The notes beneath the pieces were generated by a model that did not search any database, was not told the origin of the DNA, and worked only from the letters and a program-made list of their open reading frames with translations. This document shows, piece after piece, positions 46,040 to 60,550 of a DNA stretch of 64,000 nucleotides. Each line of letters starts with the position of its first letter. Position 1 is the stretch's first letter. The translations under genes were made by a program, and so were the position numbers. Source of the DNA: Bigelowiella natans CCMP2755 (lineage: Eukaryota > Protista > Cercozoa); contig ADNK01000008.1 in NCBI GenBank assembly GCA_000320545.1, forward strand, positions 1-64,000. Direction: 5' to 3'.

Positions 46040-48101
46040 GATTGTAGCGAAAACCGAGAACTTGCACAGTTAAATGAATGTGATATTATGAAAAGGTCCA
46101 AGTAGCTAATAGTGAGGGAGTAGGGCACGGTATCTTGTCACATTTGGACAACAAAGAACTCAACGAACTTCCCTCCCATTATTATCCTATACTTATTCTT
46201 CACGAAAGACGAAAACACTCTCCATCATTGTTCGGAAAAGCAAGAAGATGATTCTGTGCTTAATCCTGACTTTCCGCTATTTATGACAGTAATTCTCCCC
46301 CTCATATCTTCTGGGATCCAAGCTTCAATCTGGAATTTCCAAGTTTGGCGAACTGCAGAGGGACAAACTACGAGAAGGGGCCTTCCAGCAAACAAACGAG
46401 CAATCAACACAACAAACTACAACAGGCAGAATTCATTCTACAAGAATCTAGGCCTGAAACTATATCATTCCTATCTTCTTTCTTTCACCACTGCCACCAC
46501 CACTTCTTCTACTACTACTACTACTACTACTACTACTATCATACCAATCATCATGATAAGCTAGAGCAATAGCTATGGCTTGAATGGTTTTCCCCAGCCC
46601 CATTTCGTCCGCCAATAGTACACGCCCCCCATGTAATAGGCCAAAGAGCACTCCCTCTGTCTGAAAGGGATAGAGCCTTTTGCGAATATCACCAGGTATT
46701 GCATCGAATCTGGCATCGGCTTCGTTTTTGAGTTTCGCTTCTCGCTTCTCCCCTTCCTTCATCGCTTTTATAGCTCTTGGGTGTATTTCCTGCAAGACAA
46801 ATCTGTCTTCAAGCTCGCGAAATCTTTCCGTGAGGAGCTTGAGTCCGGGCTCCATTCTGAAAATCCAGACAGAATCCTGCCAGGAAGTAGTAGTAGTAGG
46901 TAGGTAACAGTCGAAAACAGAGTGGACCATACTTTGACAATAAGAACACACAACAACGAACCGCACTTGGGAAGACACTAAATTGCAATAGGAGCAAATA
47001 GAGACAATGGGAGATGAAATCAAAGGCATCAAACCTCTCGCTTCCATTCAGCTTTACATTCAGGTGGCAGCGATCTAAAATATGTATGAATGTAATCTGT
47101 TCAATCTATCGAAGGGGGGGGGAAGACCTGTATAAGTTTACGAGCTCCTGGTTGAATACCGACGTCGCTGAGAACCAGCCGAACGTCCAAATAGACAACA
47201 TTACCCTGACCTAGGCAATTGTAAATTTCTCCCATAATAAACAATATTGATTGCTGATTACGATGTCCCTATATACCTTAGAGTTGTCGTCTTCGAGAAA
47301 CTCATCATTTCCAAAAGCTTGAAATAACTGATCACCACTTTCGTGGGATGATACGTCATCGTCGCTGTATCTGCCTGATAAGATATTTATCGTCAAGAAA
47401 ATCACGCACCCTGAAGAATGCGAAGTTAAAATACCATCTTGGTTTCGGACCATGTGTAACGTTCGAGCAACTTTTGCTCGTTGATTGCGACCAATCATTT
47501 CAATTGTCTGCAAATTGTCGCTTTGTTAGTGTATATTTGTTTGACTGTGAGTGGATTTGCAACCTTAGATGGTTGAACCCTTCGCATCGGCTCTACTTTC
47601 GAGGATCTTTTATAACCACCTGTGTTCACCATCGAACTCTTATCGTCAGCCCATGCAAAATATTTGCACTGAGGCGACTCAGCGCACACATAAAACCACC
47701 GTCCCTGGTTAGGTCCAGCCTGTGTAGCAAACATTGTGAATCCAATGCTGCTAACTTCTTTGTCTCCATCGATACCTTCTTCACTTGACGAGTGACGCTT
47801 CTTTTTTGGTGACCATAACATAAAGGAGGCTGTCCCAGGATTGGAGGTTGTTCTATTGGCTGACGATCGAGCGAAATTTTGAGGAAATTTGATTCTCTTG
47901 CCACCGGGGAGCCAATGTGAAGAACATGCGAAAGGGAGACAACCGTTGCAACTCCAAAGAGAAAGTATCGAAGACGCATTCTTAAGAAGTACATCCTTGC
48001 TCTGGAAGCAATGTAATAATTAGATGTCATAATATCTTATTGAAAAACAGCGGTAACCTGAAAGAGGGCATCGAGGAAGTAGAAGAGATCGATGAAGACA
48101 T
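41780..48101 (-). CDS. SNF2-family helicase, SMARCAL1/ZRANB3-like, with N-terminal GRF zinc finger and HARP-like segment
   Basis: [99 protein letters not shown]|[18 protein letters not shown]. The N-terminus reads PPLCYGH..TRQVKK|[20 protein letters not shown]. Start is 48101 or a nearby downstream ATG. Confidence 0.9.
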
Positions 48102-57155: not shown

Positions 57156-58056
57156 TGCGAACTATTGATTGTGAGAAAAGGTGCATGAATTAGTTTCTGT
57201 TCGTCCATACTGCAAAAGTAGAAAAGAAAAAGAGGATCAAGTGCGCAGTACGACTACCTTCTCCTAAGATGCAGAGATGAATAAATTAAGTTGAAATAAC
57301 TGGAATGTCTTAACCCGAGCGAATTAAAACAGCTGGGGTCGTGCGGCTGCAGTATCGACTGAGTCAATATTGAGCAACAAGCAACACATTCAATGGATCG
57401 TATTTACTGGTTACATAATTTTTCACTTGGGAAGATGTGTTTGTTGCAGACAAGACGAATGTATTTTCCTCTCTTAGATCATGCGAAGTTAGCATAAAAG
57501 CGAATCAACACAAAACTTCATCACACAGTCTCGAGAGAACTTGGATGCAGTTCACAAGAGGCATCTTTGAAACTCAATCTAGAATTGGAGGTGTGGATTT
57601 TCTTCTCAACACCCCGTGCTTGAGAAAAACGGGCTGCACATTCGAATGTACCAGGAAGCCCTGGATAACCCGAATACCCAATGGGCACGTGGAAAGTCAT
57701 TATTATCTCTACATGATGTACCAGGTCAGTTTCGAGACTAGAATGAGCAGTCCGCGCAGAGCCTGACTCTTCGTTGGCCGGCACAGCGTAGTCCTCTGCT
57801 CGATTGTGTGTGCCACGAGTATGGAGGGATAGACTCTACTGTCGTCGTGAATTCTAAGAAACAAGAAACCTAAACAAGCCTCGGAAACCCTGAACTGAGT
57901 GCGATTATTTGTTTTAGAACAAAAAGTCTTCGCATGTCACATCGGCGTTGCCAAAAAAACGCTTCCTCCCAATCGATACGCCGAATCCTTCACATTTTAA
58001 CCTTGCGACAACCCAAATTTGGAAGTCACAGGTGGATAAAATCCCCACTGCGAGTG

Positions 58057-58080: not shown

Positions 58081-58343
58081 ACGCCGGAATTTTGACAGAA
58101 ACGCATTTCATCCCGGCAATACCGGCCCTCCTCGCATTCGGCAATCAATCAATCCTGTCATATGATGTATAGAGGAATTATGAAGTGCGACAATGATATA
58201 TGTTGTCGTAAGAGGATAATGGGAGAGTGGTGGTGTACGCTCAACACACAGACTCGACGGAAGGAGCGGAAGGAGGACGGGGCGGGTCCCTGTGCCGTGC
58301 AAACGGATTTCGCCTCGAGTCTCGCAAGCCGTGCTCGCCGAAG

Positions 58344-59404
58344 ATGATGCGAGATTTGGCCAAAGTATTGGGCCTGAAAAATGCTGCTAATCGAGCACTC
58401 TCTGCCTTGGCCTTAGGTATTCACCAAGGAGTTGGGCAGGGCTTTTTACGTTCGTGATAGCTACAATCATGAACGCTGATGCCTTTGTTCGTAACGTTTT
58501 TAAATTGATGCTTTATTGTATCTCATACACTCAGAAGATGATATTTTTATTATTATTACTCCAAATAGTGGCCATGCTTGCTTTAGCAGCGAACGTCTTG
58601 GGGACGAAGAGGGGCATTAGAAAAAAAAAGGATTGGTTCAACGGATGTCTTCGAAGCGAATCGGGATATCTAGGACAGTCATTGGAAGAAAAGAGATGCC
58701 TAATGATTACAGACAAAATGGAGCCATGTTCATCGCATGCAACGACGAACTTTCCTGTTTGCTGCTGGGTGAAGGCAGGGTCAAAATTGGACATGTTCCA
58801 TCCCGAAAGATTCAACGAAGTTTTTATCTCAAGCGACCAGCTGTCCTTACTGGAAACAAGCCTGCATAACTCTTATGCAGTACTTCGTCCTGGAGGGCAA
58901 ATCATTATCCAACCGGACAAGGGCCTCAAATTTTCGACATCAAATTTGAAGCTGGCAGGATTCATACATGTACGCACGGGTGCGACGGAAACACCGTCCC
59001 GACGAATTATAGGGACAAAGCCAAGTTGGAATGTGAATTCATTCAAACGTTTACTTACCAAAAGTTCCTGGGAAGCACAACCGGAGGAGTCAGCAGTTAT
59101 GATTGACCCGGAGTCATTAATTGACATCTCCCCGAAACCGGATGCCGAGAAAGTCTTGGCCAGTAGCCCACCAGCTCGACGACGCGCATGTGAAAATTGT
59201 GTTTGTGGCAGGAAGGAAAAGGAAGTTCGAGGCGAGCTCGTCGATGAGGAAATTTTTGACAAAAGTGGAAATCTGATACCACCTAAAACCGGTGGGTGCG
59301 GGAACTGTGCACGGGGAGACGATTATAGATGTGACGGGTGTCCTTATAAAGGACAGCCTGCTTTTAGAGTTGTAGACAATATGGTTAAGCTTAAAAATGA
59401 ATAA
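58344..59404 (+). CDS. DRE2: Anamorsin/Dre2 (CIAPIN1) Fe-S assembly protein with an N-terminal hydrophobic leader
   Basis: Methyltransferase-like segment ([17 protein letters not shown]), [48 protein letters not shown]. Exon 1 (58344-58416) joins 58569 through a phase-1 GT-AG intron. Confidence 0.9.
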
Positions 59405-60129
59405 ATTACCGAATAATAGACCTAGAGGCTATACTGCATATTCGATTGTGAAGCATACTCTAGATAGTAGCATAATATGTATGTATCGTTTATCATCTAG
59501 ATCATGGCACAGGCTCAAGCATCATCATGCATCATGCATCGTCATCATCGCGTCCATCATCGCATACCTAGATGCATAGCAGAGTAGCGTTATCGTCATC
59601 ATCTATTATTAATGTTATCATTACACATTAGAATCAGCACACATGACACAGCACATGGTCGCGTCGTATGGTTGTTGTCCCAGCTATTATCATCTAGACG
59701 ACTAGGGCGGTGCGTCTCCGCGAGCTTGTGCGAAGCTACGCTCTGCACTACAGATGTGTAGTGATCACATTGTAGTGGCTGCACAGTATAGATCTAGAGA
59801 TGTTTGCGATGCGATCGATGTGCACCGTCACGCACTAGCTAGCTACTAGACTAGTATAAGTATAGAGATAGCGCTGCCAGCTGGGAACGACCACATCATT
59901 GAAGGTATTGTCATTGTGTTGTGACATGCAGGCCATTGCCATGCTCATATTGGATTTGCTGCCAAAGCACCAACCTAGTAGCAACTTCGCAGCGCTGCTG
60001 ACTCGTCAGTAGCCCATGCTACCGCATCTTGAGGCTAAATAGTCATGCGCACGCTGCGACGCTCTCTAGCTCTGTCTGTACCAGCTAGCCAGGAATAGCT
60101 AGATAGCTACGTGTACACATGATATGTGA

Positions 60130-60143
60130 GACGGATGTAATGA
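60130..60143 (+). promoter_or_regulatory. Recurrent 3' element GACGGATGTAATGA, copy 4 (downstream of DRE2)
   Basis: 14-mer identical to 55446-55459. Confidence 0.5.
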
Positions 60144-60283
60144 AATGTTTAAATTTTTTCAATGATATGTGCACATAGATAGCGTGTGCGTTACATGGTA
60201 CATGATGTGCTCACTCCTTTAAACAACGCAGTAGCTACGCTAGTGTTAAAGGGCGCACGTACAGTTGAAAAGATTTAATCACT

Positions 60284-60297
60284 TCATTACATCCCTC
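60284..60297 (-). promoter_or_regulatory. Inverted near-copy GAGGGATGTAATGA (downstream of WASHC3)
   Basis: 13/14 match to the element on the opposite strand, in sense orientation for WASHC3. Confidence 0.4.
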
Positions 60298-60550
60298 TCA
60301 CAGTTGCATGCGACACTGTCATCGCATACAGCACCATGGTCATGGGTGCAATGAACTTGCATGCTACCGCTACACATGTTAGGCTTGGTTTTGGAAAAGG
60401 ACAAAATACTTGTACAATTTTTAAGTAGCTACGTGTTGTCGATTCGGGATTAGCGCTCTACATGTGTTTGCGCACGTGCGAATTGCTTCACCGGCCTCTC
60501 CTGGATCGCGTGTTTCCTTTGTTGTATCTCTCTGGACTGCTACCTTGTAC

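Follow-up and report, generated by a model that had tools for sequence, protein, structure and literature searches.

We analysed a 64,000-nucleotide (nt) stretch of the Bigelowiella natans CCMP2755 assembly (GenBank GCA_000320545.1, contig ADNK01000008.1, positions 1 to 64,000; the whole stretch is referred to as the window), in which a gene for Dre2/anamorsin, an electron-transfer protein of cytosolic iron-sulfur (Fe-S) protein assembly (CIA), lies at 58344-59404 on the + strand. The gene has two exons and encodes a spliced product of 302 amino acids (aa), in which an N-terminal leader precedes the Dre2 domains. An earlier reading of the letters of this DNA (the original prediction) had proposed that the leader directs the protein to the periplastid compartment (PPC), the remnant cytosol of the endosymbiont, where it would serve a second CIA pathway. 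Below, the gene model, the leader, the predicted destination of the protein and its altered cysteine motif are examined in turn; all features of the gene are on the + strand.

A transcribed two-exon Dre2 gene

The coding part of exon 1 (58344-58416; 24 codons and 1 nt) begins with ATGATG and is supported by contigs, the intron (58417-58568; 152 nt, GT..AG, phase 1) follows directly, and exon 2 (58569-59404) ends with a TAA stop codon at 59402-59404. Exon 1 codes for residues 1-17, which form a basic N-region, and for the initial third of a hydrophobic core. The exon joint was seen in three sequencing runs (X1, X6 and X9; three studies, same organism), each of which contributed one contig with exact removal of the 152 nt. 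These runs had been presumed to be RNA beforehand, and the contigs were assigned to spliced transcripts because the intron is removed exactly. The contigs extend from 58228, 58288 or 58258 (56-116 nt upstream of the ATG at 58344) to approximately 59491-59521, with zero base differences from the DNA. The stop codon together with the 3’ untranslated region (UTR) spans 59402-59521, up to the furthest contig end. The Dre2 gene is real, expressed and supported by transcripts, and both the junction that the original prediction had placed at 58417-58568 and its coordinates and spliced peptide agree with the 302-aa frame recovered here.

The 5’ UTR has a minimal extent of 58228-58343, bounded by the most upstream end of the RNA-derived contigs. 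Because this segment is free of ATG in all frames and the reading frame is closed by a stop upstream of 58344, the ATG at 58344 is the first AUG met by a scanning ribosome. Initiation is possible only at this position, giving a preprotein with an extension of ~64 aa. A start downstream of the hydrophobic stretch, which the original prediction had named as a way in which it could fail, is thus not what the transcripts give.

The public gene model for this locus (P0001 from EukProt/MetaClust; 288 aa; 58538-59404, +) takes an intronic ATG (58538) as its start and continues across the 3’ splice site, so that its hydrophobic N-terminus is partly derived from the intron. Intron retention was considered as the origin of this model and ruled out, because the intron is uncovered by any contig and raw reads there amount to traces only. 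The 5’ end of P0001 is probably wrong, and the transcript-backed 302-aa gene model corrects it.

The identity of the protein was established by searching against Pfam, which gave a match to CIAPIN1 (PF05093; 59171-59377; residues 201-269 of the exon-2 translation) with an E-value of 8.5e-13 and 49.1 bits against a cutoff of 22. A match to Anamorsin_N fell below threshold (E-value 0.28), and a sequence search against solved structures returned zero matches. An N-terminal S-adenosylmethionine (SAM)-methyltransferase-like domain of the anamorsin type (residues ~65-177; 58688-59026) was delineated by AlphaFold2 confidence and Foldseek: block means of the predicted local distance difference test (pLDDT) were mostly 88-95 for residues ~40-150 of the 277-aa piece that was modelled, and the best match in the Protein Data Bank was the N-domain of human anamorsin (2yui; E-value 1.1e-6), followed by 4m7r and 2ld4. 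Between the two domains lies a flexible linker (residues 178-222; 59027-59161) with pLDDT of ~50-64. A profile search yielded 1180 family matches for Dre2. The protein of the window is a Dre2/anamorsin homologue with an N-terminal extension; judged from its sequence, it belongs to the family by descent, and its motif I is non-canonical.

The N-terminal leader and its relatives

The leader comprises three parts. Residues 1-17 form a basic N-region with 4 K/R and 1 D. Residues 18-36 form an uncharged, Ala/Leu-rich core of 19 aa, delimited by composition and hydropathy, in which the Kyte-Doolittle mean over 9 residues is above 1.4 at residues 21-33; the remainder of the core after the exon joint (residues 25-36) is encoded at 58569-58603, and candidate signal-peptidase sites may lie at its end, after A-L-A or V-L-G. 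Residues 37-64 (58604-58687) form a hydrophilic spacer of 28 aa with 7 K/R and 3 D/E (net +4), which resembles a transit peptide in composition, is disordered in the AlphaFold2 model and evolves with a dN/dS of about 1.3. The ~20-aa hydrophobic stretch and the basic segment that the original prediction had described ahead of the Dre2 domain are therefore both present. In total, 66 residues precede the first beta-strand, of which 41 lie in the exon-2 piece that was aligned and 25 ahead of it; the corresponding numbers are 59-65 in three members of the same clade (described below) and, as a median over 62 other Dre2 proteins, 8.

The nearest sequences were collected from a culture transcript (P0002/P0004), Norrisiella sphaerica MMETSP0113 (P0125/P0270), Gymnochlora sp. 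CCMP2014 (P0126) and a JGI transcriptome (P0124). P0002/P0004, the transcript of a relative with 76% identity, has the same residues at the junction and a Met at the same position. In Norrisiella P0270, whose Met is preceded by an in-frame stop, a basic N-region of 20 aa (5 K/R) leads into an 18-aa hydrophobic core and a 22-aa spacer. The hydrophobic core of P0124 gives way to a stretch of ~45 aa, rich in Ser and Gly, that resembles a typical transit peptide, so that spacers among the orthologues range from 22 to ~45 aa. The Gymnochlora record is apparently truncated at its N-terminus. In the P0124 transcript (locus L001, 1-260), an in-frame, Arg-rich Met codon lies 29 codons upstream of the called start, and the true N-region of this protein may also be long and basic. 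Elsewhere in the window, the putative first exon of a SMARCAL1-like gene (47626-48030, -) codes for a ~22-aa basic N-region, a ~15-aa hydrophobic core and a hydrophilic stretch, as in Dre2; in this genome, leaders with a long basic N-region may be usual among proteins of nuclear or cytosolic type.

Rates of substitution were estimated between the window gene and P0002, which are separated by a dS of ~0.43. The dN/dS was 0.15 for the CIAPIN1 domain, 0.25 for the N-domain and 0.33 for the linker, values which indicate that the Dre2 domains are under purifying selection. It was ~0.6 for the hydrophobic core (79% identical) and ~1.1-1.35 for the N-region and spacer, where codon counts are small and the frame is kept. 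A pattern of this kind is expected of a translated targeting presequence.

For placement of the protein, an exhaustive profile search against 1.84 billion representatives recovered only its own cluster at E-values <1e-30, with the next match at 2e-24. This Dre2 lineage is very divergent, since nothing beyond its own cluster was found at that threshold. The next-best nameable matches, among the 20 representatives that were named, came from a beetle, the green alga Pyramimonas and the amoebozoan Cavenderia. A word-based search found only the public model of the gene itself, one close relative and one dinoflagellate-like protein; the profile built from alignment A1 was drawn towards alveolates by that dinoflagellate-like sequence, and in the profile built from alignment A4 low-complexity words dominated, giving 29 matches that missed known clade members. 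A metagenome scan, which held no culture transcriptomes among its matches, returned only distant environmental Dre2 genes with 24-50% identity.

In a maximum-likelihood tree of 151 Dre2 proteins, the window protein falls into a clade of five on a long branch, with a Shimodaira-Hasegawa-like approximate likelihood ratio test (SH-aLRT) support of 98, and the named members of this clade are the chlorarachniophytes Norrisiella and Gymnochlora only. The sister of the clade in a quick tree (SH-aLRT 83) is P0248, a canonical leaderless Dre2 from an environmental sample. A further candidate member, P0139, whose sample is numbered next to that of Norrisiella, did not join the clade in the tree on account of its long branch (1.87) and shows no leader in any frame. 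Taken by its sequences, the leader-bearing Dre2 appears to be an old, fast-evolving clade common to several chlorarachniophyte genera. For Nbp35, both B. natans copies fall into the clade of stramenopiles, alveolates and Rhizaria (SAR), pointing to duplication in the host (PMC6105332); by analogy, host duplication may also apply to Dre2.

Predicted destination of the leader-bearing Dre2

We consider that the leader-bearing Dre2 is probably sent to the PPC as part of a second CIA set. The hydrophobic core would serve as an endoplasmic reticulum (ER) signal peptide and the spacer as a transit-peptide-like sequence, and the two in combination would bring Dre2 through the outer membranes of the plastid to the remnant cytosol of the endosymbiont, where it would pass electrons from co-targeted Tah18 to a co-targeted Nbp35 scaffold. 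The Fe-S proteins of the nucleomorph and PPC would thereby be matured. That the organism might lack a PPC had been raised by the original prediction; the DNA comes from a chlorarachniophyte with a nucleomorph-bearing PPC, in line with the clade recovered in the tree. Of the two chlorarachniophyte nuclear genomes that have been sequenced, the GC content of the window (41-49%) fits that of B. natans (45%, with a mean intron of 184 bp) and not that of Amorphochlora amoebiformis (27%) (PMC12730881).

Proteins of this kind have been listed before. In the screen of B. natans, Guillardia theta and Phaeodactylum by Grosche et al. (2018, Genome Biol Evol, PMC6105332), Table 1 gives for B. natans both a cytosolic and a PPC Dre2, together with predicted PPC versions of Nbp35, Nar1, Cia2 and Tah18; no PPC set was found in the diatom, which lacks a nucleomorph. 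For G. theta, the PPC proteins Dre2, Nar1, Nbp35, Tah18 and Grx3 were localised as fusions to green fluorescent protein (GFP), and the Dre2 fusion was seen in the PPC (PMC6105332). The premise of the original prediction that Dre2 never carries a signal peptide is therefore outdated, and a periplastid CIA pathway including Dre2 was already proposed in 2018 (PMC6105332); the reading is plausible but not new. What stands of the original prediction is a leader-bearing, expressed Dre2 in a nucleomorph-bearing alga, with the leader kept in other genera; a periplastid CIA set accounts for these features best. A second CIA pathway bears on how a relict nucleus is supplied with Fe-S clusters in a compartment free of mitochondria, a question that was raised and partly answered by Grosche et al. 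Three points are apparently new: the correction to the gene model, the finding that the leader-type clade is conserved in several genera, and the lack of the first cysteine in motif I.

Several points weigh against PPC targeting. The localisations are confined to the Guillardia proteins, and a single Tah18 was detected in B. natans (Table 1, PMC6105332), which weakens the picture of two complete sets. The targeting sequence of B. natans Dre2 was described as ‘not very pronounced’ (PMC6105332), an assessment that the long N-region (17 aa) of the window protein fits. The uncharged stretch of 19-20 aa is sufficient for a membrane anchor, and together with the basic cluster that follows it (KRGIRKKK) it is also compatible with a signal anchor of an organelle or a sorting signal for mitochondria. 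No leaderless host-type Dre2 from a named chlorarachniophyte was found in the protein profile searches. The green-algal affinity for which the original prediction had proposed a phylogeny was not found; the clade sits on its long branch, and the 151-protein tree resolves neither an algal ancestry nor a sister of known taxonomy.

These points bear on other readings of the leader. It is unlikely, in our estimation, that the hydrophobic stretch is an uncleaved N-terminal signal anchor, which would tether Dre2 to the cytosolic face of the mitochondrial outer membrane, the ER or the outermost plastid membrane, with CIA electron transfer taking place at that membrane. A hydrophobic stretch with an adjoining basic cluster is the classic layout of an outer-membrane signal anchor, and the window protein has 19-20 uncharged, Ala/Leu-rich residues of moderate hydrophobicity followed by six K/R in 8 residues, with one Asp afterwards. 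There is also a SAR precedent in Toxoplasma gondii NBP35 (TgNBP35), whose conserved N-terminal transmembrane domain sits at the outer membrane of the mitochondrion, with Tah18 and Nar1 also mitochondrial; Toxoplasma Dre2 itself, however, is cytosolic (PMC12674569). The description ‘not very pronounced’ was extended to the leaders of B. natans Nbp35 and Tah18, which would suit an anchor, but a duplicated CIA set that tracks the presence of nucleomorphs is better explained by a second compartment (PMC6105332). Within the clade, moreover, the basic flank is not conserved, being near-neutral in P0002 and replaced in P0124 by the acidic-to-neutral Ser/Gly-rich stretch, and the strongly hydrophobic part of the core covers only ~14 residues before a polar stretch of small residues with A-x-A and V-x-G sites.

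Less probable still is a bipartite signal for the mitochondrial intermembrane space, in which a basic presequence would precede a hydrophobic stop-transfer segment for sorting. Both yeast Dre2 and human anamorsin have been reported in the intermembrane space as substrates of Mia40, and such a reading would draw on the intact twin CX2C motif II, on the long basic N-regions of the window protein (4 K/R and 1 D in 17 aa) and Norrisiella (5 K/R in 20 aa), and on that of P0124 if the upstream Arg-rich Met were used. Yet the N-region is short for such a presequence, contains an acidic residue and evolves neutrally; CIA partners without a known role in that space (Nbp35, Nar1 and Cia2) bear similar leaders, and all named members of the clade are nucleomorph-bearing algae. 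Delivery of Dre2 by a bipartite leader into the plastid stroma, instead of the PPC, is very improbable. Stromal and PPC preproteins of chlorarachniophytes both carry a signal peptide and a transit-peptide-like sequence and are not reliably distinguishable by sequence (PMC3542566), but plastids use the SUF system for Fe-S clusters, with no CIA component known to act in the stroma (PMC6105332), and leader-bearing partners of the cytosolic type point to a cytosol-like compartment. We give almost no credence to the leader being an annotation artefact ahead of a leaderless cytosolic Dre2 that starts downstream. P0001 does start elsewhere and in-frame Met residues occur at positions 27, 70 and 75, but exon 1 is spliced in frame in all three contigs, the 5’ UTR of at least 116 nt is without ATG so that 58344 is met first, Met27 lies inside the hydrophobic core, and the leader frame and start position are kept both in the relative at a dS of ~0.43 and in Norrisiella.

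Motif I, surroundings and comparison with known systems

The hallmark of the Dre2 family is a CX8CX2CXC motif (M1) followed by a CX2CX7CX2C motif (M2), with one Fe-S cluster each (PMC8251831); the spacing given for M1 is that of the human protein, and the first interval varies across the family. In the window protein, M1 (59162-59206) has Ser223 in place of the first Cys, encoded by AGT at 59162-59164 and separated by the human-type 8 residues from C232-x2-C235-x-C237, and M2 (59297-59341) is intact (C268, C271, C279 and C282). The column of Ser223 holds Cys in at least 90% of 68 aligned Dre2 sequences, an alignment which, with the sequence itself, agrees with the degenerate motif I and intact motif II of the original prediction. 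The linker of the window protein has no Cys able to substitute, and only 8 of 296 Dre2 sequences (7 distinct proteins, counting that of the window) lack a Cys in the 25 residues that precede the motif I core. AGT is a single A-to-T change from TGT. RNA editing and sequence error at Ser223 were ruled out, as the three RNA-derived contigs are identical to the DNA.

Neither the window protein nor Norrisiella has the first motif I Cys. Gymnochlora and P0124 retain it, at 7 and 9 residues, respectively, from the Cys that follows, and in P0002 a Cys stands 12 residues upstream. P0139, the possibly related long-branch sequence, likewise lacks the first Cys. Because the first Cys is missing in some clade members and present in others, this ligand appears to be labile in the chlorarachniophyte clade, with the rest of both motifs invariant. 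The loss appears to be unreported, given that the word ‘cysteine’ is absent from the main text of Grosche et al. (PMC6105332).

An altered ligation of the cluster is suggested solely by the missing Cys, and the outcome may be a non-cysteine or external fourth ligand, a cluster bridged between subunits, or loss of the M1 cluster. We tentatively put forward, as a possibility we hold to be doubtful, that the periplastid Dre2 of Bigelowiella and Norrisiella works with a three-Cys motif I, which would either hold its electron-accepting [2Fe-2S] cluster with a non-cysteine or external fourth ligand or have lost it, leaving motif II alone redox-active. In human CIAPIN1, the [2Fe-2S] centre accepts electrons from NDOR1 (PMC6006191), and the title of Netz et al. 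2016, as it stands in the reference list of PMC6508740, names the [2Fe-2S] and [4Fe-4S] clusters of yeast Dre2 as essential. If the three-Cys arrangement were real, nature would have produced a variant CIA electron-transfer chain, evolved in a remnant cytosol free of mitochondria. The first motif I Cys, near-invariant in eukaryotes, is dispensable or replaced in part of the clade. For Fe-S biochemistry, it would offer a natural three-Cys variant, a detail rather than a new system.

Around the gene, exons of the upstream neighbour (57500-57751 and 57722-57844) are covered by RNA-derived contigs. Directly 3’ of the Dre2 gene lies the segment 59405-60120, in which CTAG occurs 15 times (21 per kb, compared with 2.4 per kb for the window as a whole) and short palindromes are abundant. 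It is followed at 60127-60300 by a 174-bp element with 21-bp inverted terminal repeats (19/21 positions complementary), whose ends occur in many unrelated RNA-derived contigs with very high summed depth, varied flanks and poly-A/T loose ends, and which looks like a dispersed, transcribed element of the miniature inverted-repeat transposable type. A G>A variant is common at 60126.

Compared with known systems, the window gene is very probably the PPC Dre2 gene of Table 1 in Grosche et al., with which it shares nuclear encoding, a weak bipartite targeting sequence and a separate cytosolic Dre2 alongside; the main text of that paper does not deal with cysteine motifs, orthologues in other chlorarachniophytes or a Dre2 phylogeny (PMC6105332). 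The PPC Dre2 of Guillardia theta (JGI ProtID 199508) is likewise a leader-bearing second Dre2 in a nucleomorph-bearing alga, within a PPC CIA set with Nbp35, Nar1 and Tah18. Guillardia, however, is a cryptophyte with a red-algal endosymbiont, hence an independent origin, and its protein was localised heterologously as a GFP fusion in Phaeodactylum, whereas the location of the window protein is predicted (PMC6105332). Toxoplasma NBP35 resembles the window protein as an early CIA factor of a SAR-group organism that is moved out of the cytosol by a hydrophobic segment at its N-terminus, but it is a different protein from a single-copy gene, its segment is an uncleaved anchor in the mitochondrial outer membrane, and the Dre2 of the same parasite is not so relocated (PMC12674569). 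Measured against this myzozoan type of anchor, the length of the uncharged stretch (19-20 residues) and the basic flank of the window protein fit, and the flank is absent in P0002 and P0124. With human anamorsin (CIAPIN1) and yeast Dre2, the window protein shares the SAM-methyltransferase-like N-domain, the flexible linker, the CIAPIN1 domain and motif II, and its motif I core, CX2CXC, keeps the human spacing of 8 residues to the first ligand position (PMC8251831). It differs from both in its 64-aa leader and in Ser as the first ligand of motif I, and from other Dre2 proteins in general in being only ~25-30% identical to them, on a long branch.

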